Assembly (NCBI GenBank): GCA_002794465.1
Contig: MTSL01000086.1
Coordinates: 1-20,010 of the forward strand
DNA: 20,010 nt
Direction: 5' to 3'
From: Paramicrosporidium saccamoebae KSL3
Lineage: Eukaryota > Fungi > Cryptomycota
Part shown: piece after piece, positions 1 to 20,010 of the stretch
Position numbering within the stretch: position 1 is the first letter of the stretch
Layout: every line of letters starts with the position of its first letter
The notes under the pieces: model-generated
What the model saw: the letters and a program-made list of their open reading frames with translations, nothing else
Told to the model about the DNA's origin: nothing
The model's database searches: none
Made by a program: the position numbers and the translations under genes

Positions 1-80
1 GGGGGGGGGGAGGAGTAAAGTGGTATGAAGGGGGCAGGTGAAGAATAAACAAAGGACGAATGAGTGAAATATTAAACTTT

Positions 81-130
81 CGAACCACTCCGAACCACTT
101 CGAACCACTTTGAATCACTTTGAACCACTC
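81..130. repeat. 10-bp tandem repeat (CGAACCACTT consensus), 5 copies, more degenerate to about 150
   Basis: Units read directly: cgaaccactc, cgaaccactt, cgaaccactt, tgaatcactt, tgaaccactc. Confidence 0.85.
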
Positions 131-3661: not shown

Positions 3662-4681
3662 TTAGCTGTCATCTTCAATACCAGCGATTATCAACTTGAC
3701 TGGTTTAGTGCAAGTTATGGATCCCAGAGATTGGACCATCTGCGCTCCATACCGTTCACTTTGTTGTCCAAGATAGTCATACCAGCTCAGATTGGGATGG
3801 CGGGTTTTAGTAAACTCGTAGAACATGTAGAGAAAGGCGACTCGTTCGCGCACCCAATGTTCCTTGTATGTTCCCCGCATCTTTTCAATATCGGTCAAGT
3901 TCAGTCGTCCATACACATTGTTACGCTGAATGAGCGTCTGAGCAGGGAGTTGATGGTTGATCAGCATGTCACGCATTATCATAGCCATAGTTGTACGACC
4001 CTTTCCTGCCTTGCAGTGGAAATGCAGCCAGGTCGAGGCGGATTCATTCAGTTCCACAAATTGCTGTACCTCTCTATCCCGCGGGCGACGATGGTCCGGC
4101 ATGTAGATCCGCACATATTTGACGTTCCCAGCCTCCAGAAGTGATCCTTCGGTTCGGGCTGTGGTGAATTTCAGTTGGGTTCTGTTCTGTATTTTCTCCG
4201 AGTCGTGGGGCTTTTCATAAACAATCGCACTGTGTTGGCCAGCCAGTTTCTTAAAGTCGTCTAATTCGTTCTTTGTAAGGTCATCCATCTTTGTATGTAG
4301 TCGATCCCAATTTCGAGGGCAGAATAACCCCACTGCCTGGTCGTCCAAGAAGCCGTGCGACTCCATTCGCAAATCGACCACTGTGGTCTCTCCACCCCAT
4401 GCATTCTTCAGCCAGGTGAGGTGGTTGCCACAGAACTGTGCGCTTCCAGACATACGTGTCGCTTCGTAACCGGTCAGATCTAGGGGCGGTACTGGTCCTA
4501 CTTGCTCATGGTATGGTTTGAAGTGCATAGCCGGGTTGTCAGTGACAGAGCGGTAGCGACGCGGAGTGGGCGGGCACTCATTCAAGACCAACTCGCGAGT
4601 GGCATTTCCGGCCTCATTTTGACTATACGGTGGACACAGAGAGGCTCCAACCAGAGGTGATACTATAATAGAGAGTTTCAT
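3662..4681 (-). CDS. PTP-like phytase (cysteine phytase / inositol polyphosphate phosphatase), 339 aa, probable signal peptide, intronless
   Basis: Motifs SGSAQF, VVDLRMESHGFLD, YVRIYMPDHRRP and P-loop HFHCKAGKGRTT. The first ATG is 4681 (the track start at 4687 is GTG), giving the hydrophobic N-terminus MKLSIIVSPLVGASLC. Confidence 0.9.
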   Translation of the reverse strand: MKLSIIVSPLVGASLCPPYSQNEAGNATRELVLNECPPTPRRYRSVTDNPAMHFKPYHEQVGPVPPLDLTGYEATRMSGSAQFCGNHLTWLKNAWGGETTVVDLRMESHGFLDDQAVGLFCPRNWDRLHTKMDDLTKNELDDFKKLAGQHSAIVYEKPHDSEKIQNRTQLKFTTARTEGSLLEAGNVKYVRIYMPDHRRPRDREVQQFVELNESASTWLHFHCKAGKGRTTMAMIMRDMLINHQLPAQTLIQRNNVYGRLNLTDIEKMRGTYKEHWVRERVAFLYMFYEFTKTRHPNLSWYDYLGQQSERYGAQMVQSLGSITCTKPVKLIIAGIEDDS

Positions 4682-4732
4682 GCACACAGCCCCTGTCGAA
4701 GGGTTGAAGTAATTTATTAAAGTCGGTGGCGC

Positions 4733-5640: not shown

Positions 5641-5802
5641 ATCGTGTAATGTAAACACGTATCCATTATGGTGCAATCTAAATAGTTGCCCGCTATGGTG
5701 CAATCTAAACATCTATCTACTATGGTGCAATCTAAACAGTTACCCACTATGGTGCAATCTAAACATCTATCTACTATGGTGTAATCTAAATGCGTATACA
5801 CT
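5641..5802. repeat. 27-bp minisatellite, 6 copies, with an alternating 54-bp higher-order pattern
   Basis: Each unit has a core ATGGTGCAATCTAAA plus 12 variable nt. Units 3 and 5 share catctatctact; units 2 and 4 have tagttgcccgct and cagttacccact. Confidence 0.9.
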
Positions 5803-5989: not shown

Positions 5990-6574
5990 ATGTTTGACTG
6001 TTTTGATCGGCGTGACTATGGATCGGGCTTTTTTGGATGCACAGAGGACATTGGCGGGTGCTGTTACACATGGTATTGTCTGCCGTGCTCTGTGGGCTCG
6101 CTAGTTGGTCGCATGGAAGGCCAATCCTTCAATTGGGCTGTATGTCGGATGGTATTTCTCATGTTTAGTCGTGTTTGGTCCCTGGCGTGGGCGCTTATCG
6201 TGTGCGGCGTCATATCCAGAACTATCATCGGAACAAAGAGCCTGAAGATGACACTACCGCTGCCGTTTGCTGTTGTCCCCGGCTCGCGTATCTCTTTTAT
6301 TATATCGTTAACCTGTAGGGTAATGCAAGATAGACGCGAGTGGAAGCGTATCGTAGCCAGCGGCGCAGCTCATCGCATGCAATCCCCAATGATGATGCCG
6401 CCAACCACAATGATACCGCCTCATCATATGGCTCACTCCCCGGTAATGTCGCCCCATCACATGGCTCACTCTCCGGTAATGTCGCCCCATCATATGACTC
6501 CCTCTCCGGTAATGCCCCCACAGGCAGGACAACACCAGCCACCGGGCAATCATGCTCCCGATTCTAAAAAATAG
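5990..6574 (+). CDS. PLAC8-family Cys-rich protein, copy 2, 3 exons (5990-6139, 6169-6287, 6319-6574), 174 aa, with Pro/His/Met-rich tail
   Basis: Removing introns 6140-6168 (29 nt) and 6288-6318 (31 nt) gives FNWA-SCLVPGVGAYRVRRHIQNYHRNKEPEDDTTAAVCCCPRLA-VMQDRREWKR, collinear with copy 1. AATAAA is at 6581. Confidence 0.85.
   Translation: MFDCFDRRDYGSGFFGCTEDIGGCCYTWYCLPCSVGSLVGRMEGQSFNWAVCRMVFLMFSRVWSLAWALIVCGVISRTIIGTKSLKMTLPLPFAVVPGSRISFIISLTCRVMQDRREWKRIVASGAAHRMQSPMMMPPTTMIPPHHMAHSPVMSPHHMAHSPVMSPHHMTPSPVMPPQAGQHQPPGNHAPDSKK
6419..6517 (+). repeat. In-frame 33-bp tandem repeat, 3 copies (PHHMAHSPVMS)
   Basis: Three near-identical units, ccycatcayatgrctcmctcyccggtaatgycs. Confidence 0.9.
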
Positions 6575-7057: not shown

Positions 7058-7162
7058 GCCACAAAAATAAAGTTTGGTTCTAGTCGAGGGTGATTGGTTA
7101 AGGGTGTTGGACGTCTCATCCTCAAGTTCATAGGAGCCTATTTCCATGGGAAGACTAATGAG

Positions 7163-8557
7163 ATGCAGGTAGCGACACTTTCCGTATATAAATGGCAACG
7201 GATATTGGGTCTAGTTCTGGCCGTCTTGGTGCCGTGTTTAATTCTGGCATGGCCAAAATACGATCCACCCACTGCAAACCGATGCTTCGCCCTACTAATC
7301 GGCGTCATCATTCTTTGGGTCAGCAACGCATTGCCCCTCTTTGTCACTGCACTGCTCATCCCCTTATTTGGGGTTGTAGGTCAGATAATGTTGGACGAGT
7401 CGGGAAAAGTATTGTATGCCCCAGTTGCCATGCAGCAATTGTTGTCAGTGATGCTTGGAACGGTCATTCCGGTTCTTCTGGCCTCTTTCTGCATTGCTCA
7501 CTGTCTCCTTCGTCGTCAACCGCGACTACCAGTCCAGCTGCCACCCACACTTTTCCTCCTCGTCCTCATGATCATCTCTCTCACCATGTGCATTGGCCTG
7601 GCCAACACCAGCTGTGCAATCTTTGCCCAAATGCTGCTGAGTGGGATGGATGGGATGCTAGAGGGTCGTTATTCAAAGGCGCTCCTAATGGGTGTGGCCG
7701 TGTCATGCAACCTCGGAGGTTACTTGTCACCAGTCAGTAGTGGACAGAGTGTTTTCATGTATACACTCGCTCCAGAAGAAATGGGGTTGACATGGTGGAT
7801 TTGGATGAGGGCGACAGTTCCTTGCGCATATCTCAGCATTTTCGTAGGATGGTTCTATATCTGCTGGCACTACGACCTGGGAAGCGTTGCATTGCCCAAA
7901 CGGAAATCGGTCCCAGTGTTAGTAGATTCACCCAAAGAAGAATCTATGCCAAAGTGGAAGTTGTACACTGCTATAGGGATCACATTTGCAACTGTCGTAT
8001 TATGGGCCACCAGTTCCTTGACCGAGGCATACCTTGGTGGAATGGGCTGCATTGCCTTTATCCCAATTATCCTGCTCTTTGCACTTGACATTCTGACTCT
8101 TCCCGATCTGCACAAAATTCCGTGGGATTTCATTCTATTCATGATGGGTGCCTTGGCCTTGGTCGAGGTAGTTCGTTCCTCGGGTCTCCTTCAGGAGCTG
8201 ACCGTTGAACTCTCTGCTCTCCTCAAAGGACATTCGCCTCTCATCAGACTCTTCATCATCAGTGCCTGCCTCTTTCTCGCCTCGACTATCAAGTCACACA
8301 CTATTGCAGGCATGGTTTTCATGCCAATAGTGGTGAATTACATTGCAGAGGACCGGGCAACATTCATGGCTGCCGTGACGGCCACCTGCAGTGGAATGAT
8401 CTTTCATTTTTCGTCCCTGACTAACATGGCACTAATGTCAGCTACGGATGGGGATGGCAACGCCGTTCTCGCCCAGAGAGACTTTTTAACAGTGGCTGGC
8501 CCCATATCCCTAATTTCCTTTATAATCTCCATTACAGTCATCCCGCTGTTGCTCTAG
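7163..8557 (+). CDS. DASS/SLC13-family multi-TM anion transporter, Pho87/Pho90/Pho91-like, lacking the N-terminal SPX domain
   Basis: CFALLIGVIILWVSNALPLFVTALLIP, KALLMGVAVSCNLGGYLSPVSS and IPWDFILFMMGALALVEVVRSSGLL align by eye to the Pho87 membrane region. The first ATG is 7163 (the track start at 7094 is TTG), so the exact start is uncertain. Confidence 0.8.
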   Translation: MQVATLSVYKWQRILGLVLAVLVPCLILAWPKYDPPTANRCFALLIGVIILWVSNALPLFVTALLIPLFGVVGQIMLDESGKVLYAPVAMQQLLSVMLGTVIPVLLASFCIAHCLLRRQPRLPVQLPPTLFLLVLMIISLTMCIGLANTSCAIFAQMLLSGMDGMLEGRYSKALLMGVAVSCNLGGYLSPVSSGQSVFMYTLAPEEMGLTWWIWMRATVPCAYLSIFVGWFYICWHYDLGSVALPKRKSVPVLVDSPKEESMPKWKLYTAIGITFATVVLWATSSLTEAYLGGMGCIAFIPIILLFALDILTLPDLHKIPWDFILFMMGALALVEVVRSSGLLQELTVELSALLKGHSPLIRLFIISACLFLASTIKSHTIAGMVFMPIVVNYIAEDRATFMAAVTATCSGMIFHFSSLTNMALMSATDGDGNAVLAQRDFLTVAGPISLISFIISITVIPLLL

Positions 8558-8700
8558 GCGCACAACACTGGTACTTTTAAGAATAAATCAATGTTTATCA
8601 GCAGCAGACATTCCTACTATAAATGGCAGAGTGCATGAAACTAAATAAGATTGTCTTCTTAACTATCAAACTGGAGTCCACTAAACCCCATAGCCGTGCC

Positions 8701-10374
8701 ATGTCTCCCAGTCGCCTCCGGGAACTCTACGACATGCTTAGTCACGAAACCGGTCTCGACACGAGCCGTGTTTTCCGCAACTCCAGCGTCGCCACTCTCT
8801 ACGAGGACGCGCTGCGGTACGAAGAGGGCACGGTCATAACTCTGTCGGGAGCACTGGCAACATTCAGTGGAAGCCGCACAGGAAGGAGCCCCAAAGACAA
8901 GAGAATTGTGGACGAAGAGGGCAGCGCAGGAGATGTTTGGTGGGGTCCCGTAAACATTAAGATGGACGAGCATACATTCATGGTGAACCATGAGAGATCG
9001 GTGGATTATCTAAAGACGAGAAAGAGGATCTATGTGTTTGACGGATTTGCCGGATGGGACCCCGAACATCGCATCAAGATCCGCGTCATTTGTGCACGTG
9101 CTTACCACGGTATCAAAGTATGGTATAGTCTTAGACCCTTTAGCATTGTTTATGCACAACATGTTGATAAGACCCACCGACGAAGAATTGGAAAACTTTG
9201 GAAGACCCGACTTTACCATTCTGAACGCTGGCGAGTTCCCGGCGAATCGCTACACTACCGGAATGACCAGTCCCACCAGCGTGGCCATTAACTTTAAAAA
9301 GCGCGAAATGGGTAAAGTCTGGGCATTCCTCACGCTTTAGTCATTTTGGGCACTCAGTATGCGGGAGAGATGAAAAAGGGAGTCTTTACCGTGATGAATT
9401 ATCTGATGCCCAAGGCAGGGATCCTGTCTATGCACTCGAGTGCCAATGTTGGCTCGGATCCTGCCGATGTCACCCTCTTCTTTGGCCTCTCTGGCACAGG
9501 AAAGACCACTCTCTCTGCGGATCCCAAACGCAATCTGATTGGCGATGACGAGCACTGTTGGAGCGACAATGGAATCTTTAACATTGAGGGTGGGTGTTAT
9601 GCCAAGTGCATCGATTTGAGCCACGAGAAGGAGCCTGAAATCTTTGATGCTATTCGCTTTGGTTCAGTGTTGGAAAATGTTGTCTATGATCCCGTCACTC
9701 GCGAGGTTGACTATACCAACAAGAGTATTACGGAGAATACCCGTTGCGCCTATCCCATTGAGCACATTCCGCATGCAAAGATTCCATGTGTTGCTGGGCA
9801 TCCAAAGAACATTATCATGTTAACCTGTGATGCTTTTGGAGTGCTGCCCCCCGTCTCAAAACTGACTACTGCACAGGCCATGTACCATTTCATCAGCGGC
9901 TATACGGCCAAGATTGCTGGAACTGAAGACGGCGTCACAGAACCGTCGGCCACCTTTTCCGCCTGCTTCGGTCAGCCCTTCCTGGTGTGGCACCCCACAA
10001 AATATGCCGAAATGTTGGCTGATCGCATGCACAAGCACCAGGCCGACGCTTGGCTGATCAACACTGGCTGGTGCGGCGGCAAGTTTGGTGTGGGATCACG
10101 CTGTCCTCTCAAGTATACCCGTGCCATCATTGATGCCATTCATTCGGGAGAATTGGCACAGGCAGAGTATGAATTGTATCCAATCTTCAATCTCCACGTT
10201 CCAAAGACCTGCTCGAACGTGCCCTCCGAGATACTGCACCCCGAACGCTCTTGGAAGGACGAGTCGTTGTTTGAGGAGACTCGGAGTAAGGTGGCCGCTT
10301 TGTTTGTTGAGAACTTTGCTCAATATGCCAAATTGGCCTCTGAGGAGACAATCTCTGCCAGCCCTCAGATCTAA
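8701..10374 (+). CDS. PCK1: Phosphoenolpyruvate carboxykinase (ATP), 3 exons (8701-9109, 9144-9311, 9341-10374), 536 aa
   Basis: Motifs [59 protein letters not shown]. Introns 9110-9143 (34 nt) and 9312-9340 (29 nt) explain the three ORF-track pieces. The 8623 ATG overlaps a TATAAA (8618-8623), so I prefer 8701. Confidence 0.95.
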
Positions 10375-10424
10375 GGATGTAATAAAAACCTGTGAACATT
10401 AAGCCCATGCCCAGGATCCCAAGT

Positions 10425-10655
10425 GGAATTTGAATGTTTATTATACACAAGGGTGGATCCTATGGCCCATTTTAGGACATAAAGACGAGCAATGCAAAAC
10501 TTTCATTTTGGCCGTAAACCCGCCTCACCCTAACATTGGGATTTGGATGTTTATTGTACACAAGGATTGGTCTCTACGGCCCATTTTAGGAGATAAATAT
10601 GGGCAATGCAAAAAACTCTTCCATTTTGGCCGTAAACCCACCCGGCCCTAGCATT
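10425..10655. repeat. Imperfect direct duplication of about 113-118 bp, 2 copies (10425-10537, 10538-10655), containing the BET5 3' end
   Basis: Both copies share atgtttatt-tacacaagg, ggcccattttagga, gcaatgcaaaa and cattttggccgtaaaccc. Confidence 0.85.
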
Positions 10656-11029
10656 TCTCCATCCAAAGGAGCCACCATTGGATTTTTCACCACCCAGTCC
10701 ACAAAAGGCCCAGCATAAAACGTCTTCAATGCCGTCGTCTCGGTTACAGTCGTACCCGCATAGACACAGCTTCCGGTCGGCCCACCCATCAGCATCACAA
10801 ACCGCCATCCAGAGGGCGACTCGTAGTAATGCAGGCGGTATCGGTTGGTGCGGTAAGAAAAGGACGAGGAGGGGGAGGGTGCCAATTTCCGGAGAGTGCC
10901 GCGGAGGGAATGGCAGAGGCCGAGGAGGAGAGACATACTGTCCTCGTCAGGAAGGTTGCCCCGTGGACCAAAGTGGCGGTCGAGACGGCAGCGGTATTGC
11001 CGGTCAAAGATGAGCAATCGATAGATCAT
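10586..11029 (-). CDS. BET5: TRAPP complex subunit Bet5/TRAPPC1 (longin-like), 147 aa
   Basis: Motifs MIYRLLIFDR, LLLGLCHSLR..LRKLAP, FSYRTNRYRLHYYESPSGWRFVM, FVDWVVKNP. The first ATG is 11029 (the track start at 11038 is TTG). Confidence 0.88.
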   Translation of the reverse strand: MIYRLLIFDRQYRCRLDRHFGPRGNLPDEDSMSLLLGLCHSLRGTLRKLAPSPSSSFSYRTNRYRLHYYESPSGWRFVMLMGGPTGSCVYAGTTVTETTALKTFYAGPFVDWVVKNPMVAPLDGEMLGPGGFTAKMEEFFALPIFIS

Positions 11030-11149
11030 CAAAAACAAAGAAAATGATATTGCTTTGAGCCAACTAATTGAAATGACTAACTATCAGCCCTTGCAAGATG
11101 TACACATAGCTACGCTGCAGCCATTGGAGCTTGAAACTTGTTGTACTGA

Positions 11150-11608
11150 CTCGAGCAATGTCATTTATTATACGGATTATAATGTACAAGAGTTAAGGTT
11201 CTCCCAGACTGAGGATAGAAACTCGCGATACTAAGTGGCTTTGACAGTCTTTCCAGTGCCGATCAGTGGGTCAAAATCTAGCGGCTAGAAGTGAACGGAT
11301 TATGACACGGTGAATGAAACATAATAAGAATGAATGCGAGACGATGCTGGTCCAAACAGATACAAAGGTGGTCCGGCTTCAACAGAGACATGACAAATTA
11401 ACAACACTCCATTCCAGTAATAAGACCAGGAATGCTGAAGCACTGTACTAGATTTTGGATGGATACACTGTCCCTTGAAGGCCTCAATGCCACGCACGTT
11501 GTCAGGTAGGTAATCAAGAGTAGCCAGAATCCATTTATTGTCCAGTAATCTTCCTTGTGAAAAGGATGTGTCGTGCTATTTCGACTATGCCAAGACGACG
11601 TCAATTGA
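11150..11608 (-). pseudogene. Degenerate 5'-half remnant of family A (cassette 1)
   Basis: Nucleotide homology to the A copies: tcatttattatacggattata and ttctcccagactga (11161-11212; compare 14261-14313), and EDYWTINGFWLLLITYLTTCVALRPSRD versus GYWTVNRYKLLLDTRMAMYLIFRPAKG. It has frameshifts and stops, and the conserved ATG reads ACG. Confidence 0.75.
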
Positions 11609-11899
11609 CTGCAAAGTCAAATTTCGGGCCGCTTGGGAGGCGCCTTTACAATGGGTTTCGTGGAGCGATTCAGAAGCCGATCACGAGAGCAAATTATTCC
11701 GATAGCTGCTACTGACGTCTATATAATTGATTATACAACAAATCTAAGAATTGGTCGCATTGTAAAAAGTTCCTGTTGGAAGAGCAGCTCCATAGGGGTC
11801 AATACAAAGATACATAGGCGGTTAACTTTGAAAACAATAGTGACCGGCTTTTATGGTTTTTATAATGCGGGGCTTGTGTACGTCGGACTCTGAATCCGC

Positions 11900-11962
11900 C
11901 CAATCGTTTACATTAAAACGCAATTTGGCTTGTTTGAGTCGACTCTTTGTTGCCTATAAATA
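11900..11962 (+). promoter_or_regulatory. Family B promoter, copy 1: CCAAT (11900) and TATAAATA (11955)
   Basis: Same spacing to the ATG as in the other two B promoters. Confidence 0.65.
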
Positions 11963-11990
11963 TCGCAATAGATACGGCCCGACAGCAAAC

Positions 11991-12780
11991 ATGCACCAAC
12001 TAGCAAAAATCATCGGTATCATCTTTGCTGATCTCTCTGCTTTCCGCGTGGCCACAAAGAACTTGGAAAAGCTGCAATCTACAAACCGGTGCTCCATTAT
12101 CGTCTCCTTGCTCTTTCTCTCCGGAATTGAGTATCTTGGCTGCCCTGGGCGTACCTTGGTGGGAGTTGATTGCCAGACTTGGTTCAATCGCTTTGTCGCT
12201 TGCAGTGCTTTGGTGCCGCTATGGATGGCACTGTCGCAAACAGTTGAAGTTGATTGAAAGATACGCAAGGCTATGCCCGCCAGATGCACTGCGGTGCAGA
12301 GTTTCGTGTTTGGAGACAGTATTGGTACATTGAATGCGACCCTACTTAAACCCTAGATCGCATTTCACCAATATGGTCAAGGGATTGACGCTTCCATTTT
12401 GTCCCACATCTCACTGCCCCAGACCTGCAGCAAGCGTTTGCTACCATCAGCCTTTACAGAGGCCAATGGCTGTCGTATCAAGCCTTCCAAACGGCATACC
12501 TCTCCAAAGACACATTCCGGGACGTGGAAACGTTTCGAGGGCGTGCCTTTTTGTTGATCTTCACAGATCCCACCGTTTCAGCGCGGTGCCGTGAATGGTT
12601 TGTGGAGACCGTAATCGTCTTAAAACTATGCCGCGTCTTGCGTGGCGACAAGGCCAGTGACCTTGTTAGGTACATATGAAAAAACTCTGGGCTCGATAGA
12701 GGGACGCGAATTGTAGCCTATGTGCACTACTGCCTGAAGACCGAATTCAACCTGGTGAGATCTTTGTGCTAATTTACGAC
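11991..12780 (+). pseudogene. Family B pseudogene (cassette 1), frameshifted, retaining a 32-nt intron at 12325-12356; may extend to about 13150
   Basis: Pieces MHQLAKIIGII..ATK, AALGVPWWELIARLG, QQAFATISLYRGQWLSY, LLIFTDPTVSARCREWFVE and SDLVRYI*K align with the intact B. A frameshift lies near 12140, and TGA replaces Trp at 12677-12679. Confidence 0.8.
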
Positions 12781-13799
12781 TATTCTGAGAATCCGTGATT
12801 TGTACAACGCATCGAGATGGTCCTTGAATTTCATGGAGACGCCCAAGGAGATAACGTGCCCGTTTCAAGCCCGGCCTGTGACATATTGAAGGGACATGCA
12901 ATGTAATGTGGTTTCCAGGTGAATCGAAAACCTGTATAGACCTTTTTGAGACTCTATTGGCAGCCCATTCAAAGTCCCTATTATTATGAGGTCTGTTATT
13001 CGGTCATCATTGACGAAACGGCTGTTAAGAAACGTCGCTTGTGGGCCTGTGAAATTAGAGTCAAAAATAACTTGTTGCGTCAAAACTCTCCAAGCGTCTA
13101 TAGGTGCATGAGGGCTACAGATGTTTGGAAAGTTTTGACGCAAATGTAAAAAACCATTAATAGCAATGTGTGTCTTAAAAGACATTGAATCTATAGTCAA
13201 AAAGACCTTTGCACGTGTTAATTCGATCATTCTGAGATGTTGATCGGTAAATATATCAGTTTGACAAGTCGGGATAAACAAAAGCGACCCTAATAGACCT
13301 ATAGCACGATATTAAATGGAACGGGCATGAATCAGGCTCATTTTAGAACATTAATCAAAGTAAATATTCACTAACAGTAATGATAAGGTATTGCGTCAAT
13401 CGTGCAACAGTATATAGTCAAGTAAATGTTGTTCTGAATACATAAAAGTCGTTTGAAGATTGATTGCGAGAGACAAAGTAGTGGTCGTGAAATCGATAGT
13501 TCAATGCATTAGGGTATCATTAGGTCACAGTTACTCAAGCCCAAATATTGAGTCGTGAGCTTGCTGCCGCTATTTTATTTAATCCAAATTATACCAACTA
13601 GTTTGAACTCGGCATTTCTGGGTCCTCCAGATCGGATTCTTAATTTTCGGTCTATTCCAAATCCAAGAGTCTGCTTGTCTCTTCATCTAGTGCTATCAAG
13701 ATCCATATAAACGATCAGAGCATCCTCTGATATGACATTGTGCTCTACAAGCACTCTTGCTAAAGTGCACAGCGACTATAAAGCGTTGTCTATATTACA

Positions 13800-14624
13800 T
13801 CATACATTCTCCCCAGGTAGGACCAGGTCTGAAATTGAACTGCAGCATCCACAGCTCACTCGATTAGCTAATAAAAACCACGGATGTCGCACATCGTTGT
13901 CATATTCCGCCACTTCTATCGGCGTGAGAAAGAGTTCGTCTTCAGGTCCTCTCAAGATGCACATCATTGCGCCCAGAGATTCGACTGTGCACTTCTTCTC
14001 GTTCAGAAACACCCCATCTTCCCAGCGAGACCTGATATCGCCAACTCGAAGGAGAAACGTGTACAGCTGCGCTGCAACGATAAAGCCCATAACAAAAAAT
14101 ACAATGGAACCAATTCCGAGAAAGTATCCAGCGCTGAAGAACCCAGCCAGTACTACTATCGGAATGGCATCGGTGAGCACGACGATGAGCCAGCCAAGCC
14201 ATTTACCATATTCTTTGTCGTAGTAAAGACTGACGAGTCGTCTCCTCGGACAATGCCATTTATCATACGGACTATACAATGCCAGGGAGAGAGAGTCAGG
14301 ATTCTCCCAGACTGAAAACAAAAACCCGAAATGTCTGAGGTGATTGACTTTAGTTGAAATATTTCTGTCTGTGGAATGGAATTTGGCAGCTACGAATGAC
14401 CGAAGAATGATGCAATCAACGAAAATGAAGGGCAATGGATGCAAAACGAAACCAACCCAAATGGAAACAAAAGTGGTGCGGCTCCAAAACGGATAACAGA
14501 GGTTAACAACATTCCATGCCAGTAGCAAAATCAGGAAGGCATCAGCAGCAATGCTGAGACATCGGACCAGCCTTGGAATGAATATGCTACCCTTGGCAGG
14601 CCTAAATATCAAGTACATCGCCAT
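13800..14624 (-). CDS. Family A uncharacterised membrane protein of about 4 TM, copy A1 (cassette 2), 274 aa
   Basis: Intact ORF with four hydrophobic segments and a C-terminal CGCC. About 89% identical to A3 (31 differences by manual count). A possible upstream micro-exon lies at 14727-14717. Confidence 0.75.
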   Translation of the reverse strand: MAMYLIFRPAKGSIFIPRLVRCLSIAADAFLILLLAWNVVNLCYPFWSRTTFVSIWVGFVLHPLPFIFVDCIILRSFVAAKFHSTDRNISTKVNHLRHFGFLFSVWENPDSLSLALYSPYDKWHCPRRRLVSLYYDKEYGKWLGWLIVVLTDAIPIVVLAGFFSAGYFLGIGSIVFFVMGFIVAAQLYTFLLRVGDIRSRWEDGVFLNEKKCTVESLGAMMCILRGPEDELFLTPIEVAEYDNDVRHPWFLLANRVSCGCCSSISDLVLPGENV

Positions 14625-14733
14625 GCGGGTATCCAGGAGTAGCTTGTATCTATTTACTGTCCAATAGCCGTCACTCCTGAGGAGGAGGATGTGTTAGTGC
14701 TATTTTTAGAATATACCAAGAAGGCATCAATTG

Positions 14734-15060
14734 CACCGTCGCCGCGTCCTACTGAAGTTGGCGAAGCACTATCTCGCACTGTGCCCTTTCGGAACCCTGA
14801 AGAGAGAAGCAATGTTCAGTGAAGCTATCTCGGTATGTTGCAGACGGGCTTACTCATCTACTTAGATCGCCTGTAGGCAGCATGGGCGTACTGATGCGTC
14901 CTCGCTTTCGCAGTTTCCATTCCCTGCACCATAAAAGGTTTTTATCATCAGCAGCCTTTACAAGGTCAATGGTTGGGCATTGAAAAGTGCCTTGTCGACT
15001 TGGACATTGTGAGAGTAGCCTTATGGTGTTATGTTGTCAACTAAAGACTGATCCACAAAT
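14734..15060 (+). pseudogene. 5'-truncated family B fragment (cassette 2), retaining a 33-nt intron at 14833-14865
   Basis: HRRRVLLKLAKHYLALCPFGTLKREAMFSEAIS-[intron]-IACRQHGRTDAS aligns with YRHCALLKAAERYLTLSPLGTLTESTTFSEAVS-IALQQYGLTDAS, then decays. The 3' end is approximate. Confidence 0.75.
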
Positions 15061-15294
15061 ATGCTATATGACCACTTTTATTTCATGTCAAGGGCTTAAT
15101 TGCTAGAGTCGTAGAAGCGGATGATTCGATACATTGCTGAGTCTTATCTTATTCGATTTTTTTACCTGGATATTCATTCATCTGATGGCATCAAGATTCA
15201 TAAAATCAATCGGAGCGTTCTCTGATAAATTATCATGTTCTACACATACTCTTAAGAAAATGCGCGGCAACTATAAAGAGTGGTTTATAGCGCA

Positions 15295-16113
15295 TTACAC
15301 ATTGTTATCGGGTGGAGTAAAAGCAAGAATTAAAGTGCAACATGCGCAGCCCGTTTTCTCCGCTGTGTTAAACCAACGACACCTTTCGTAGTGATCATAG
15401 AGCACCACCTCAATGAAGGTTAAGAACAGCTCGCCTTCTGGTCCATTCAGAACACACATCATCACTCCGAGGGATTTGCTGGTACAAGTTTTCCCGTCCA
15501 GGAACCTATAGTTCCCCCAATGATCGCACGCATCACAAACGCGAAAGAAAAGTGTGTTCAACTGCAGTAGCAAAAGAACCCCCATAAAGAAAAACAGGAT
15601 AGAGCTGATTCCGAGGAAGTAACCGGCACATAGAAGAACAAATAATATTACCGCCGGGATGGCGTCAGTGGACAATACGATGAGCCAGCCCAGCCATTTC
15701 TTATAGGTTCTTGGACAACCAAGGTCTATAAGACGTCTCTTAGGGCAATAGACGGTGTCAAATGCATCGTAGTAGCCAAGTGTTAGAGCGTCAGAGCCCT
15801 CCCAGACTGAGAATAAAAACCCGCGGTACTTTAAGCGGCTTTGGCAGGCTGTCCAGCGCTGGTCAGCGGGTTGAAGCCGAGATAATATAAAAGAGCGAAG
15901 TCTAAAGCGTTCAATAAGCCAGAAGAAGATAGGGCTCAGAATGAGGCCGACCCAAATGGACGCAAAGGTAGTCCAGCTCCAAATTGGATAGCAGGTATTT
16001 ATGACACTCCACCCCATTATCAGGAGCAGGAATGCATCAGCGGCAGCACTGATACAGTGAACCAGCCTCGAAATAAATACATCCCCCTTGGAAGGTCTAA
16101 ATGTCAAGTACAT
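15295..16113 (-). CDS. Family A membrane protein, divergent copy A2 (cassette 3), 272 aa from the first ATG
   Basis: Intact ORF collinear with A1/A3 and roughly half identical (GFLFSVWE, CP.RRL, KWLGWLIVL.TDAIP, GPE.ELFL). The track start at 16119 is TTG. Confidence 0.75.
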   Translation of the reverse strand: MYLTFRPSKGDVFISRLVHCISAAADAFLLLIMGWSVINTCYPIWSWTTFASIWVGLILSPIFFWLIERFRLRSFILSRLQPADQRWTACQSRLKYRGFLFSVWEGSDALTLGYYDAFDTVYCPKRRLIDLGCPRTYKKWLGWLIVLSTDAIPAVILFVLLCAGYFLGISSILFFFMGVLLLLQLNTLFFRVCDACDHWGNYRFLDGKTCTSKSLGVMMCVLNGPEGELFLTFIEVVLYDHYERCRWFNTAEKTGCACCTLILAFTPPDNNV

Positions 16114-16508
16114 CGTCAAGTAGGTAGTCTGGAGTCGCCTGCACCCATTTATTGTCCAATGACCGCTACTCCTGAGGAAGCCGTGTTAGTGCTAGTTTTA
16201 GAACATGCCAAAAGGGTATCAATTAGTCTTATTTCTGCACTTTAGCCTGCCCAAAAGCTACACTAACTACCAATTTCATGGAGGCCCCAGAAATAGATCA
16301 AGAGGACACTTTCTCGCCAATAGATCTTTTCACAGGGTTTGATTGGCCTATTGGTCAGAATTGGCCATCATCCGCATCGCATTAGGCATTTACTATACAA
16401 AGAATCCATAGCATTAATATCGATCGCACAGCCATTAAATTGTCAAACCACATTAGATCAGTTCTCTCATCTCATTCAATCAGTACGTCACAACCCATCA
16501 ACGAGCGT

Positions 16509-16598
16509 CCAATCAGCATCGGGCAATTGTTGCTGTTTGTTGCTGTCGACTCGTTGACAACGCCTATAAATACCGCAACGGATGCGACTCGACAGCAA
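16509..16598 (+). promoter_or_regulatory. Family B promoter, cassette 3: CCAAT (16509), TATAAATA (16565), flanked by a 14-bp imperfect inverted repeat
   Basis: CCAAT to TATA is 56 nt and TATA to ATG is 36 nt. Inverted-repeat arms are 16540-16553 and 16585-16598. Confidence 0.65.
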
Positions 16599-16600
16599 AC

Positions 16601-17734
16601 ATGAACACCGTCGCGCAAGTATTCGGTGCTATTGTCGCCAGCTTTGCCACTGTCCACGTTGCAACCAAAGACCCCCAGTCTTTGGAAGGTACTTACCGGG
16701 GCTTTCACCTTTTAGGTTTGCTGGCCTCCTCCTTGACGGGGTACCTCGGAACCATCGCCGCCTTCGATGCCTCCTGGTGGGCTTTCCTCGCTGGTCTCGG
16801 ACCAGTGGCCATCGCAGCTTTGGTGCTGTTCGTGCGCCACGAGTACCGCCACTGTGCCCTCCTCAAGGCGGCTGAGCGCTATCTCACCTTGTCCCCCCTC
16901 GGCACGCTGACAGAAAGCACGACGTTCAGCGAGGCTGTCTCTATTGCCCTCCAGCAATATGGACTCACTGATGCCTCCCGTCTCACCCGCTTCAGTTTCG
17001 ACACCCTGCAAAGGGCGTTCGCTACCACCAGTCTGCGTCTCGGCCGTTGGCTGAGCTATGCGGAGTTCCGTGCGGAGTGCACTTCCTCAAGTGCACTTCA
17101 TGGCGATTACGACTTTGGGGCGAAAGCCGCACTGCTCGTTTTTGTTGACCCTACAGCGGCGATTCAATGCCGTAGGTGGTTTGTGGAGTACTCAGTGCTC
17201 CTAAAGCCGGCCTATTCCCTGAAGGGCATGGAGCTGGTGGACCTAATTCGGTTCATCTGGAAGAGTGGGGTCCTCGACCGGGGGATCCAGTTGGATTGCA
17301 CTCTTCGGGCATTCAAGTGCCTTGAATCCGAGCCCATGATGGCCAAGTCCCTATGTGTCGCATTACTCTGCGAACATCCAGACGACATCTGGATTCATCG
17401 GCAGCTTTTTTCAAAGCTGGCCTACCTCGGGAGGGAGTTGAAGCTGGAGAGCATTGTCCCCCATGAGACACTGGACATAGCCCAATGGTATGCCCCAGGA
17501 AGTAAGAAGGAGTGTCAATTCTGTAAATATCGCCCGCCTGCTAGTCAACCCGCTCGGATGAGATTCTTTCGATCCGCTTTAGCACAATCAATTCAGTTTT
17601 TCCGTTCCCCCTACTGTAAAATTTGCCGTGTAGAGACTTTGGAGAAGTTGAAGGTTGAAGATGGTCCGCCTGCGAGATTAGATGAACAGCTTCATGAAGA
17701 AACGCCGTTGAGTGGAATTGCAACCCAAGCCTAG
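16601..17734 (+). CDS. Family B uncharacterised protein, only intact copy, 377 aa: about 3 N-terminal TM, soluble region, two C-terminal CxxC motifs
   Basis: Long intronless ORF directly after a conserved TATA and gacagcaaacATG. Three paralogous remnants lie in the window. The CxxC motifs are ECQFC and YCKIC. Confidence 0.8.
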   Translation: MNTVAQVFGAIVASFATVHVATKDPQSLEGTYRGFHLLGLLASSLTGYLGTIAAFDASWWAFLAGLGPVAIAALVLFVRHEYRHCALLKAAERYLTLSPLGTLTESTTFSEAVSIALQQYGLTDASRLTRFSFDTLQRAFATTSLRLGRWLSYAEFRAECTSSSALHGDYDFGAKAALLVFVDPTAAIQCRRWFVEYSVLLKPAYSLKGMELVDLIRFIWKSGVLDRGIQLDCTLRAFKCLESEPMMAKSLCVALLCEHPDDIWIHRQLFSKLAYLGRELKLESIVPHETLDIAQWYAPGSKKECQFCKYRPPASQPARMRFFRSALAQSIQFFRSPYCKICRVETLEKLKVEDGPPARLDEQLHEETPLSGIATQA

Positions 17735-18215
17735 ATATAGTGGAATAAACCAGCGCCATGCGCACTTTATCGACATTATGGAAGTATTAGTAGCAGTGTT
17801 GAAATATCGCATTAATTACTAAAATGCTGAAGCAATCCTATGGTGATGGTGTCAGGTAGATGATGACAAAATAAATGTACAAGGCCATCACTTTTAGCAC
17901 AAGACAGAGCTGGATACATTGGGACAACACAGATGGGTACAGGATGTCAAAAGCTCAATGTATTGAGTCGCTATTAGTTTGGAGTGACTTGTATTCAATG
18001 CTCGTTTGTATCCCCACTGGCGCTATATTTGCCTTTAAATTAATTAGCCCCCTTTAACGTCGATGCTCTTGAAACCATTGGATAGAATAGAAGCAATCCC
18101 ACGTACAAGATCCATGTACTATGACCTGAAAAATCCTCTGATCTGCGCTACCATACTTTTCACTAGACCTGTTTATTGACAAACTTCTATACCAAAGCAA
18201 TTTGGATACAATGCA

Positions 18216-19040
18216 TCATACATTCTCCCCAGGTGGGACCAGATCTGAAATTGAAGTGCAGCATCCACAGCTCACTCGATTAGCTAATACAAACCACGGA
18301 TGTCGCACATCGTTGTCATATTCCGCCACCACTATCGGTACGAGAACAAGTTCGTCTTCAGGTCCTTTCAAAATACACATTAGTACCCCCAAGGATTCGA
18401 CTGTGCACATTTTCTCGTTCAGAAACACCCCGTCTTCCCAGCGAAACCTGATATCGCCAATTCGAAAGAGAAGTGTATACAGCTGCATTGAGAGAGCAAA
18501 ACCCATCACAAAAAATACAATGGAACCGATCCCGAGAAAATAGCCAGCGCTGAAGAATCCAATCAACACTGCAGTTGGAATAGCATCGGTGAGCACGACG
18601 ATGAGCCAGCCAAGCCATTTACTATACTCTTTGTTGTAGTAAAGACTGACGAGTCGTCTCCTCGGACAATGCCATTTATCATACGGACTATACAATGCCA
18701 GGGAGAGAGAGTCAGGATTCTCCCAGACTGAAAACAAAAACCCGAAATGTCTGAGGTGATTGGCTTTAGTTGAAATATTTCTGTCTGTTGGATGGAATTT
18801 GGCAGCTACGAATGACCGAAGAATGATGCAATCAACGAAAAGGAAGGGCAATGGATGCAAAACGAAACCAACCCAAATGGAGACAAAAGCGGTGCGGCTC
18901 CAAAACGGGTAACAAAGATTAACAACGTTCCATGCCAGTAGCAGAATCAGGAAGGCATCAGCAGCAATGCTGAGGCATTGGACCAGCCTTGGAATAAATA
19001 TGCTACCTTTGGAAGGTCTAAATGTCAAGTGCATCGCCAT
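18216..19040 (-). CDS. Family A membrane protein, copy A3 (cassette 4), 274 aa
   Basis: Intact ORF, near-identical to A1 including upstream DNA as far as 19149. Confidence 0.75.
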   Translation of the reverse strand: MAMHLTFRPSKGSIFIPRLVQCLSIAADAFLILLLAWNVVNLCYPFWSRTAFVSIWVGFVLHPLPFLFVDCIILRSFVAAKFHPTDRNISTKANHLRHFGFLFSVWENPDSLSLALYSPYDKWHCPRRRLVSLYYNKEYSKWLGWLIVVLTDAIPTAVLIGFFSAGYFLGIGSIVFFVMGFALSMQLYTLLFRIGDIRFRWEDGVFLNEKMCTVESLGVLMCILKGPEDELVLVPIVVAEYDNDVRHPWFVLANRVSCGCCTSISDLVPPGENV

Positions 19041-19432
19041 ACGGACATCCAGGAGTAGCTTGTATCAATTTACTGTCCAATAGCCGTCACTCCTGAGGAG
19101 GAGGATGTGTTAGTGCTATTTTTAGAATATGCCAAGAAGGCATCAATTGGATGCATTAGCCAACTCTGGCCTACTCAAAAGGCACATTAGCTATTGATTT
19201 TGTAAAAAATATCCAAAAGCCTCTCGAGAGGAAAAATTCTTTCGGCAATTACTGCTGATGCTCTTATAACTAATAAAAATAGTCGATCTGCCAATTAACC
19301 GCTTCACACAAAATCCCTTCTGGGTGAGCAGTTTCATGATGGCTGGACACAGATAGCGAAACTGTAAAGAAACAAATAATGGCCGACTCTTATCATGCAA
19401 TAGTTCGAGAGCGCGTCAAACTCCGACTTTGA

Positions 19433-19521
19433 CCAATCACGTACATGAAAACATAATTTAGCTCTTTTGGGTCGACTCTTTTTTGCCTATAAATACCGCA
19501 GCGGATGCGAGTCGACAGCAA
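19433..19521 (+). promoter_or_regulatory. Family B promoter, cassette 4: CCAAT (19433) and TATAAATA (19488)
   Basis: Same 55/36-nt spacing. gtcgactc (19471-19478) and gagtcgac (19509-19516) form an inverted pair around the TATA. Confidence 0.65.
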
Positions 19522-19523
19522 AC

Positions 19524-20010
19524 ATGAACATCGTCGCGCAAGTATTCGGTGCTATTGTCGCCAGCTTTGCCATTGTCCACGTTGCGACCAAAGACTCCCA
19601 GTCTTTGGAAGGTACTTACCGGGGCTTTCACATTGTAGGTTTGCTGGCCTACTCCCTGGCGGGGTACCTCGGAACCATCGCCGCCCTCGATGCCTCCTGG
19701 TGGGCTTTCCTCGCTGGTCTTGGACCAGTTGCCATCGCGACTTCAGTACTATTAGTGCGCTGCAAGTACCGCCACCGTGCCCTTCTCAAGGCGGCTGAGC
19801 GTTATCTCGCTTTATCTCCCTGTGGCACTCTGACGGAGGGCATAGCTTGTAATGAGGCTGTCTCTATTGCCCTCCGGCAGTATGGACTCACGGATGCCTC
19901 ATCCGCTTCAGTTTCGGCACCCTGCAAAGGGCGTTTGCTGCCACCAGTCTGCGTCTCGGCCGTTGGCTGAGCTATGCGGAGTTCCGTGCGGAGTGCACTT
20001 CCTCAAGTGC
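19524..20010 (+). pseudogene. Family B copy (cassette 4) with a 7-bp frameshifting deletion; runs off the window
   Basis: About 83% identical to intact B over the first 126 aa (22 differences by manual count). ccgtctc is missing between 19900 and 19901, giving a stop at 19968-19970, and the DNA beyond stays near-identical to intact B. Confidence 0.75.

Follow-up and report, generated by a model that had tools for sequence, protein, structure and literature searches.

Both genes of the peel-1/zeel-1 system encode novel membrane proteins: the toxin is a four-pass protein, and the antidote joins a soluble domain to a membrane domain through which it acts (PMC3144186). Wild alleles are known in which the toxin carries a frameshift or stop and the antidote is retained (PMC3144186). 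Here we describe two families of membrane-protein genes, A and B, that alternate on opposite strands in a 20,010-bp stretch of Paramicrosporidium saccamoebae DNA – the complete contig MTSL01000086.1 of assembly GCA_002794465.1, hereafter the window – and recur at other places in the same genome. Like peel-1 and zeel-1, A and B are tightly linked, adjacent membrane-protein genes inherited as a unit, and the pattern of one partner broken (B) and the other kept (A) is the same. The two systems differ in that there is no sequence or fold similarity between them and in that the shapes are reversed, the often-broken B having the large soluble domain and the retained A being the four-helix protein. 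In addition, peel-1/zeel-1 is a single insertion/deletion locus, whereas A and B are multi-copy at eight loci or more, and toxicity is in their case an assumption.

A second comparison is with the wtf genes of Schizosaccharomyces (PMC5478261, PMC6283613, PMC9562144). These too form a family with many copies, encode multi-pass membrane proteins and belong to a compact fungal genome, with complete units, protective-only copies and pseudogenes, long persistence, and non-allelic recombination or gene conversion; two papers describe antidote-like suppressors and persistence for more than 100 million years (PMC6283613, PMC9562144). A wtf gene produces its poison and antidote from overlapping transcripts, whereas A and B are unrelated open reading frames (ORFs) on opposite strands, and no homology to wtf appeared in a HMMER search with B (44 proteins, 22 of them checked for origin) or among 21 relatives of A. 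The wtf genes are associated with long terminal repeats (LTRs) or 5S rDNA; an Rfam search of the window gave no match, so no 5S rRNA lies there, and LTRs were not searched for. Drive by wtf is an established trait, whereas A and B are known from sequence alone.

The nearest taxonomic neighbourhood offers the large, species-specific, host-exposed gene families of microsporidia, such as NemLGF of Nematocida (PMC5423893). Like A and B they are expanded and lineage-restricted, carry membrane or targeting segments and often decay, in a parasite genome that is reduced. They are single-gene families, unlike A and B, which have an obligate partner, alternating opposite-strand arrays, co-divergence and little predicted host exposure. 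Finally, tgrB1/tgrC1 of Dictyostelium likewise form an adjacent opposite-strand membrane-protein pair with several diverged lineages. Each Tgr protein crosses the membrane once and has large Ig-like domains outside the cell, and allelic polymorphism at their one locus is extreme; A and B, in contrast, are polytopic, have predicted cytoplasm-facing domains and occur as dispersed paralogues in which one partner is often dead.

Organisation and inheritance of the A/B pairs

Our analyses make it very likely that A and B form a two-gene module specific to Paramicrosporidium and its close relatives: opposite-strand membrane-protein genes are arranged as a B>/<A unit, arrays arose by ~2.9-kb tandem duplication, and gene-body conversion or duplication tracts and deletions followed. 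The sequence-only reading of the window had proposed four cassettes in which A is retained and B repeatedly inactivated. Using tblastn (queries A2 and B3), a profile hidden Markov model (HMM) scan and ORF lists, we found this alternation to be real, with the order A' (-), B1 (+), A1 (-), B2 (+), A2 (-), B3 (+), A3 (-), B4 (+) between 11150 and 20010:

11199-11568, minus: A' remnant; tblastn aligns codons 11-107 only, at 34% identity and split over two frames; HMM match at 11274-11378
11881-11996, plus: relic of the conserved B promoter/start region, 5' of B1; 77% identical to 19414-19529 and 16537-16606
~11991-12877, plus: B1 pseudogene, codons 1-252 across three frames, with in-frame stops
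13800-14624, minus: A1, intact 274-aa ORF; family-consensus start MYLxF at the second ATG, 14618
14682-14732, minus: conserved element of 51 nt that lies 58-108 nt upstream of the A1 start (direct repeat family D5, three copies)
14698-14958, plus: B2 fragment of ~260 bp, codons 79-145 only, one real in-frame stop
15295-16119, minus: A2, intact; ATG at 16113, 272 aa
16174-16224, minus: copy of the A-upstream element before A2 (family D5)
16562-16600, plus: B3 proximal promoter, CCTATAAATACC ~37 nt before the ATG; also conserved before B4 (alignment)
16601-17734, plus: B3, the sole intact B of the window; 377 aa, of an intron-less lineage
18216-19040, minus: A3, intact 274 aa; convergent partner of B3 and near-copy of A1
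19098-19148, minus: copy of the A-upstream element before A3 (family D5)
19524-20010, plus: B4, cut by the contig end; 89-93% nucleotide identity to B3

Three A genes are intact and one is a remnant, against one intact and three broken B genes, and the lesions of the three differ as had been proposed: frame changes with stops and truncation in B1, reduction to a 260-bp fragment in B2 and a 7-bp deletion in B4. B1 has lost its C-terminal third, zinc ribbon included. In B4, CTCCCGT (equivalent to 16975-16981 of B3) is missing between 19897 and 19898, and the frame is shifted at codon 127; this frameshift is known from a single assembly. The A' remnant is the N-terminal third of an A gene, its 3' part missing. 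Because A2 shares only ~50% amino acid identity with A1 and A3, it belongs to a different A lineage. The 51-nt element, TATA-like when read on the A strand, probably serves as the core promoter of A. An annotated, domain-less 182-aa gene (12626-13230, minus) overlaps the 3' part of B1 on the opposite strand, and we consider this gene model doubtful.

A and B proved to be linked wherever linkage could be checked. Starting from A, 5 of 5 Joint Genome Institute (JGI) metagenome contigs with room downstream carry an opposite-strand B, and one of them (locus L001) is an A-B-A-B array. Starting from B, an A gene directly adjoins B in seven of eight P. saccamoebae scaffolds. Six further P. saccamoebae scaffolds are arranged as follows, with lesions in brackets:

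L008: B> <A B>
L010: a single B> <A directly after a leucyl-tRNA synthetase gene
L011: (B fragment) B> <A B> B> <A (B1, 1-nt frameshift; B2, truncated)
L012: B remnant, B> <A (B0, fragments only)
L013: <A B> <A B> <A, up to the scaffold end (B2, internal deletion of ~160 codons)
L014: lone broken B (frameshift), the exception to direct adjacency, with an A 6 kb away

Convergent B>/<A pairs lie ~330-600 bp apart. In L010 and L012 the single pairs are convergent and no A lies upstream of B, so the smallest conserved unit is the tail-to-tail B>/<A. The head-to-head cassette, which the sequence-only reading had taken as the unit, is just one parse of an alternating array.

Tandem duplications of the whole unit are visible in L013 (2157 nt at 79% identity) and L001 (1949 nt at 76%). 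Within the window, the high-identity tracts pair 13798-14733 with 18214-19149 (91%) and 16562-17094 with 19485-20010 (89%). These tracts cover single gene bodies with their proximal promoters and therefore point to later gene conversion or single-gene replacement; the idea that whole cassettes co-duplicated in the window is not borne out by its recent tracts, which span gene bodies singly.

Partners have diverged together: among 13 convergent pairs, A-A and B-B protein distances are correlated at r=0.80 (Mantel/permutation p=2e-4), against r=0.56 among 7 divergent pairs. B is consistently more diverged than A. Three pair lineages are common to P. saccamoebae and the JGI organism (B3/A3 with L001, L008 with L006, and B1/A2 of L013 with L004), so the pairs are old and are inherited as pairs.

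Decay of B and constraint on A

Over seven P. saccamoebae scaffolds, the window included, 12 A genes are intact and 1 is dead, whereas 6 B genes are intact and 8 degenerate (Fisher p=0.013). Intact B genes are B3 of the window, those of L008 and L010, B3 of L011, B1 of L012 and B1 of L013; the degenerate ones are B1, B2 and B4 of the window, B1 and B2 of L011, B0 of L012, B2 of L013 and the B of L014, with a different lesion in each. The asymmetry first noted in the window – A kept, B broken independently – accordingly extends to six further scaffolds, and is a property of the family rather than of one array.

Ratios of nonsynonymous to synonymous substitution (dN/dS) indicate constraint. The A1-A3 comparison gives 0.24 (dS 0.25), so A1 is constrained although both of its flanking B copies are dead; A1-A2 and A2-A3 each give 0.18, with dS saturated. 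For codons 1-126 of B3 and B4 the ratio is 0.33, and the B4 lesion is therefore recent. The sequence-only reading had described the pairs as fast-evolving; values of 0.18-0.24 for A instead reflect purifying selection, in keeping with pair lineages held in common with a second organism.

Not every frame change in B is a lesion. A 32-35 nt intron of the form GT(A/T)T...TAG lies between codons 114 and 115 of B. It was found by script in ten copies (L002, L004, L006, L008, L010, B2 and B3 of L011, L012, L013 and, as a 33-nt relic, B2 of the window) and added by inspection for the B of L014; positions include ~1932-1965 in L002, 361-394 in L008, ~10497-10528 in L010 and ~14833-14865 in the window. 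An intron-less lineage comprises B3, B4, the L001 copies and L009. The phosphoenolpyruvate carboxykinase (PEPCK) gene of the window contains two similar introns of 34 and 29 nt (GT...TTTAG, ~9109-9142 and ~9313-9341), and excising both restores the conserved protein. Microsporidia-like mini-introns are normal in the P. saccamoebae genome. Because the intron at codon 115 is real, B copies with a frame change there are not pseudogenes, and we rejected a mutational hotspot or phase variation as the cause of these changes in L002, L004, L008 and L010, where the conserved GT...TAG intron accounts for them.

We also considered whether splicing could rescue B4: a cryptic 32-nt GT...CAG stretch spans its deletion, and removing that stretch would restore the frame. 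This is unlikely: TAG closes all ten B introns mapped by script as well as the two PEPCK introns, and B3 uses the corresponding stretch as coding sequence, so we treat B4 as broken. In the JGI organism, the B of L002 has an in-frame stop right behind its first CxxC (~1311-1313), as does that of L003, with homology resuming in the same frame. The stop is identical in these two independent samples and represents either a recent nonsense mutation or a case of read-through or of a second intron.

The public annotation obscures much of this structure. In GenBank models, tiny introns of 29-35 nt, that of B among them, are misplaced, and genuine frameshifts are hidden under introns that do not exist (as in products P0027, P0029 and P0047). 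None of the 12 intact A ORFs on the seven scaffolds is annotated, and the neighbouring B genes are; because GenBank omits A, the family is absent from reference protein databases. The authors of the genome masked it with a RepeatScout library before MAKER gene calling, and the better-conserved A family was probably masked as a repeat and left unannotated for that reason.

Predicted proteins, distribution and genomic setting

Consistent with the proposal that A and B are both membrane proteins, hydropathy and AlphaFold2 models concur. Four stretches of A (~272 aa) are hydrophobic, at about residues 14-40, 49-78, 144-164 and 174-192, and A has a K/R-rich N-terminus and central loop. Its model, made for A2 and built from 24 sequences, reaches a predicted local distance difference test score (pLDDT) of 81.5 and consists of two helical hairpins and beta segments at 95-140 and 204-235. 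Both beta segments would lie on one side of the membrane in this model, and the charge distribution suggests that this side is cytoplasmic. A CxCC motif near the C-terminus is conserved, and the short loop between the first two transmembrane segments (YPxW) is the most conserved part of A (mean pairwise identity 0.86). In B (370-460 aa in the family), hydropathy places two or three hydrophobic helices within the first 80 residues. Its model (pLDDT 78.2) includes an all-helical domain at ~150-310 with pLDDT above 90, followed by four invariant cysteines (C305, C308, C339 and C342) in a zinc-ribbon-like CxxC...CxxC arrangement. From hydropathy and K/R content, the N-terminus, central beta domain and C-terminal domain of A and the C-terminal domain of B are predicted to be cytoplasmic; the predicted outer loops of both proteins are 5-10 residues long and conserved. 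Both proteins are thus membrane-anchored but predicted to face inward, and neither appears to have a signal peptide. An hhalign probability of 0.3% ruled out that A and B are distant paralogues.

Profile and structure searches, a check that the sequence-only reading had itself suggested, surfaced no known family, and the view that both families are undescribed holds: each is known from this lineage only. Searches of Pfam, NCBIfam, PADLOC and PDB (by sequence and by profile) matched neither A nor B, and precomputed Pfam domains were absent among the relatives of both. Foldseek returned nothing below E=0.1 for A against PDB or for B against PDB and BFVD; for B nothing fell under E=1.7 (PDB) or 0.16 (BFVD). 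The best match of A was the MscS-type structure 6pwn_A (E=0.18, template modelling (TM) score 0.19, root-mean-square deviation 21.6 Å), and local matches over 88 residues had a Foldseek probability of at most 0.54. Since these matches are non-significant and a profile search of PDB sequences was empty, we rejected the assignment of A as an MscS-like mechanosensitive channel.

The 21 relatives of A came from a set of 5.8 billion proteins and all derive from JGI or Logan assemblies. For B, the 44 proteins were recovered by an exhaustive HMMER search over 1.84 billion representatives, and the 22 checked for origin were either P. saccamoebae entries named 'hypothetical protein PSACC_...' or unnamed JGI or Logan ORFs. 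A word-indexed protein search with B and the B alignment returned only the B3 and B4 products of the window and two short JGI fragments. All JGI contigs retrieved stem from samples 3300042203 and 3300042204, for which we found no mention in the literature; neither A nor B gave a match when the JGI metagenome contig collection was scanned, and that collection apparently lacks these two samples. Scans of viral contigs (A and B) and of GTDB genomes (A) gave no match, leaving a giant-virus or bacterial origin unsupported. The expansion is lineage-specific: counting remnants together with copies, the 7.3-Mb genome of P. saccamoebae has at least 13 of A and at least 16 of B.

P. saccamoebae, a relative of microsporidia, is a parasite of the Rozellomycota that lives inside the nuclei of Saccamoeba (PMC5701793). 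Its genome assembly comprises 221 scaffolds, with 47% GC, 76% gene space and 0.53% repeats (PMC5701793). In the window, L011 and L013 the arrays reach or come close to a scaffold end. Those scaffold ends that were checked showed no telomere repeats, so a subtelomeric position of the arrays is not established. At the contig start of the window (1-129), a G10 run leads into a 10-nt repeat (TTCGAACCAC) that is present five times and differs from canonical telomere repeats.

Ordinary genes occupy the left 11 kb of the window: a 936-aa ORF and genes for a PTP-like phytase, a PLAC8/PCR-like protein, a DASS/CitMHS permease, an ATP-dependent PEPCK and sybindin. The flanking features are:

3662-4687, minus: intron-less ORF with a signal-like N-terminus and an HCxxGxxRT motif, matching the PTP-like phytase family named XopH in NCBIfam (E=1.5e-33, far under the equivalog cut-off)
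5644-5791 and 6417-6514: an intergenic 27/54-nt tandem repeat and an in-frame 33-nt repeat, the latter coding the His/Pro/Met-rich tail of the PLAC8/PCR-like protein (5990-6574)
7094-10374: a public model joining the stop-terminated permease ORF (7094-8557) and PEPCK (8623-10374) as one 1190-aa product
10424-10655: a ~114-nt tandem duplication (81.5% identity) in the spacer from the PEPCK stop to sybindin
10586-11038, minus: sybindin gene, directly after which the cassette region begins with the adjoining A' remnant

By sequence, the ORF at 3662-4687 is a relative of the XopH-named PTP-like phytases at family level only. The 1190-aa product is probably a merged annotation and not a real fusion. 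Elsewhere, next to the single B/A pair of L010, tandem ~688-aa paralogues without a Pfam match (13691-15754 and 15940-18009, minus) represent another lineage-specific duplicated family, and the public model fuses both into a 517-aa product.

Interpretations of the A/B pairs

We tentatively favour, at clearly less than even confidence, a reading in which B is a harmful membrane protein that would be neutralised by A. B would be costly or harmful, and its cognate A would counteract it within the membrane or at the cytoplasmic face, following the logic of poison and antidote or toxin and immunity. Tight linkage would hold each pair together; a B type that no longer paid its way would decay by the first lesion to arise, and A copies would stay under purifying selection as protection against matching B proteins elsewhere in the genome or population. 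A possible setting is post-meiotic spore killing, P. saccamoebae being diploid with a full complement of genes for meiosis (PMC5701793); another is competition among co-infecting genotypes. Linkage, co-divergence of partners, retention of A, repeated breakage of B and spread to at least eight loci in a repeat-poor genome are what a poison-antidote module predicts. The stronger form of the claim – that A and B are a genuine selfish element of two genes, poison and antidote, which kills spores or is turned on co-infecting genotypes and has spread to eight or more loci, with B a new membrane toxin and A a new pair-specific membrane antidote – is possible but doubtful.

Several points weigh against harm and neutralisation. 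Both genes have dN/dS below 1 (0.18-0.33), which fits an ordinary conserved function at least equally well, and pair lineages old enough to be present in two species fit such a function as well. Physical linkage alone can produce co-divergence of A and B. A sexual cycle has never been observed in Rozellomycota (PMC5701793). The topology of both proteins is predicted from hydropathy and charge, and which gene is the toxin is an assumption, the toxin-null, antidote-kept arrangement being found here as a pattern. The census of intact and broken copies covers loci reached via B or via metagenome matches of A, a part of the genome; it comes from one short-read, metagenome-derived assembly in which single-base frameshifts, such as those in B1 of L011 and the B of L014, could be errors.

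Also doubtful, and nearly as likely as the poison-antidote reading, is a non-selfish two-subunit membrane complex undergoing birth and death, in which A would be a channel- or transporter-like core kept for dosage or specialisation and B a shared accessory or regulatory subunit that decays neutrally when redundant. Purifying selection on both genes and ancient pair lineages conserved in two organisms suit such a complex, as does the presence of at least one intact B in every multi-copy array examined (the window, L011, L012 and L013). The top Foldseek matches of A, weak but recurrent, are to MscS-type channels with membrane helices and a beta domain, though none is significant (E at least 0.18, TM score ~0.2). 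Partner-specific co-divergence, however, speaks against a freely shared B, a decay asymmetry of 12/1 versus 6/8 is unusual in obligate partners, and a 7.3-Mb genome with so few repeats rarely tolerates more than 25 redundant copies.

It is unlikely that A and B are a host-interaction family, located where the surface membrane of the parasite meets the amoeba nucleoplasm and varying against host factors, with B recognised and hence repeatedly lost. Lineage-restricted, expanded families with common pseudogenes would suit an obligate intranuclear parasite, arrays at or near scaffold ends (without telomere repeats at those checked) would suit it too, and one study describes microsporidian host-exposed proteins as enriched in large species-specific families (PMC5423893). 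The predicted outside loops are, however, just ~5-10 residues long, and that of A is the most conserved segment of the protein rather than a variable one. Signal peptides appear to be absent, no dN/dS value exceeds 1, and such families do not show strict two-gene pairing.

Less likely again is a self/non-self or mating-compatibility pair resembling tgrB1/tgrC1 or the basidiomycete HD1/HD2 genes, in which a match of A and B between cells would decide fusion or compatibility. Opposite-strand pairs, tandem arrays and several deep lineages are shared with such systems, and this diploid organism with meiosis genes has yielded no compatibility loci so far (PMC5701793). Almost nothing of A or B is predicted to be extracellular, however, and no Ig/IPT domain or homeodomain was detected. 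Recognition requires both partners, yet B is often dead where A persists, and the paralogues occupy at least eight loci rather than forming an allelic series at one. The receptor-ligand idea of the sequence-only reading therefore fits poorly, since the soluble mass is predicted to be cytoplasmic and the sole, short outer loop of A is its most conserved.

Least credible is an asymmetry that arose when a diploid assembly, binned from a metagenome, was wrongly joined or collapsed in a repeated region where both genes would in truth be equally intact – arrays do break scaffolds, two B lesions are single small frameshifts and gene models bridge B frameshifts with invented introns – because most lesions are large (B1 and B2 of the window, B0 of L012, B2 of L013 and B2 of L011), the premature stop of L002 recurs in the independent sample L003, and errors would strike the equally repeated A too, of which 12 of 13 copies are clean.

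A and B may be the largest repeated gene set in this 7.3-Mb, 0.53%-repeat genome, and their arrays are actively maintained or spread by something in a repeat-poor setting. They also expose problems in its annotation: an apparently masked gene family, misplaced mini-introns and introns invented over frameshifts. If the poison-antidote reading is true, eukaryotic toxin-antidote elements would reach into the deepest fungal parasite lineage, and the pairs would offer a membrane toxin/antidote system that is compact, specific to each pair and supplied with natural variants of that specificity, as well as indirect evidence of sex or genotype competition in Rozellomycota. As a selfish element, this would be the first such system in Rozellomycota/Microsporidia, built from two folds without known relatives. 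Should that reading be wrong, A and B would still be a conserved, parasite-specific two-subunit membrane module worth localising.

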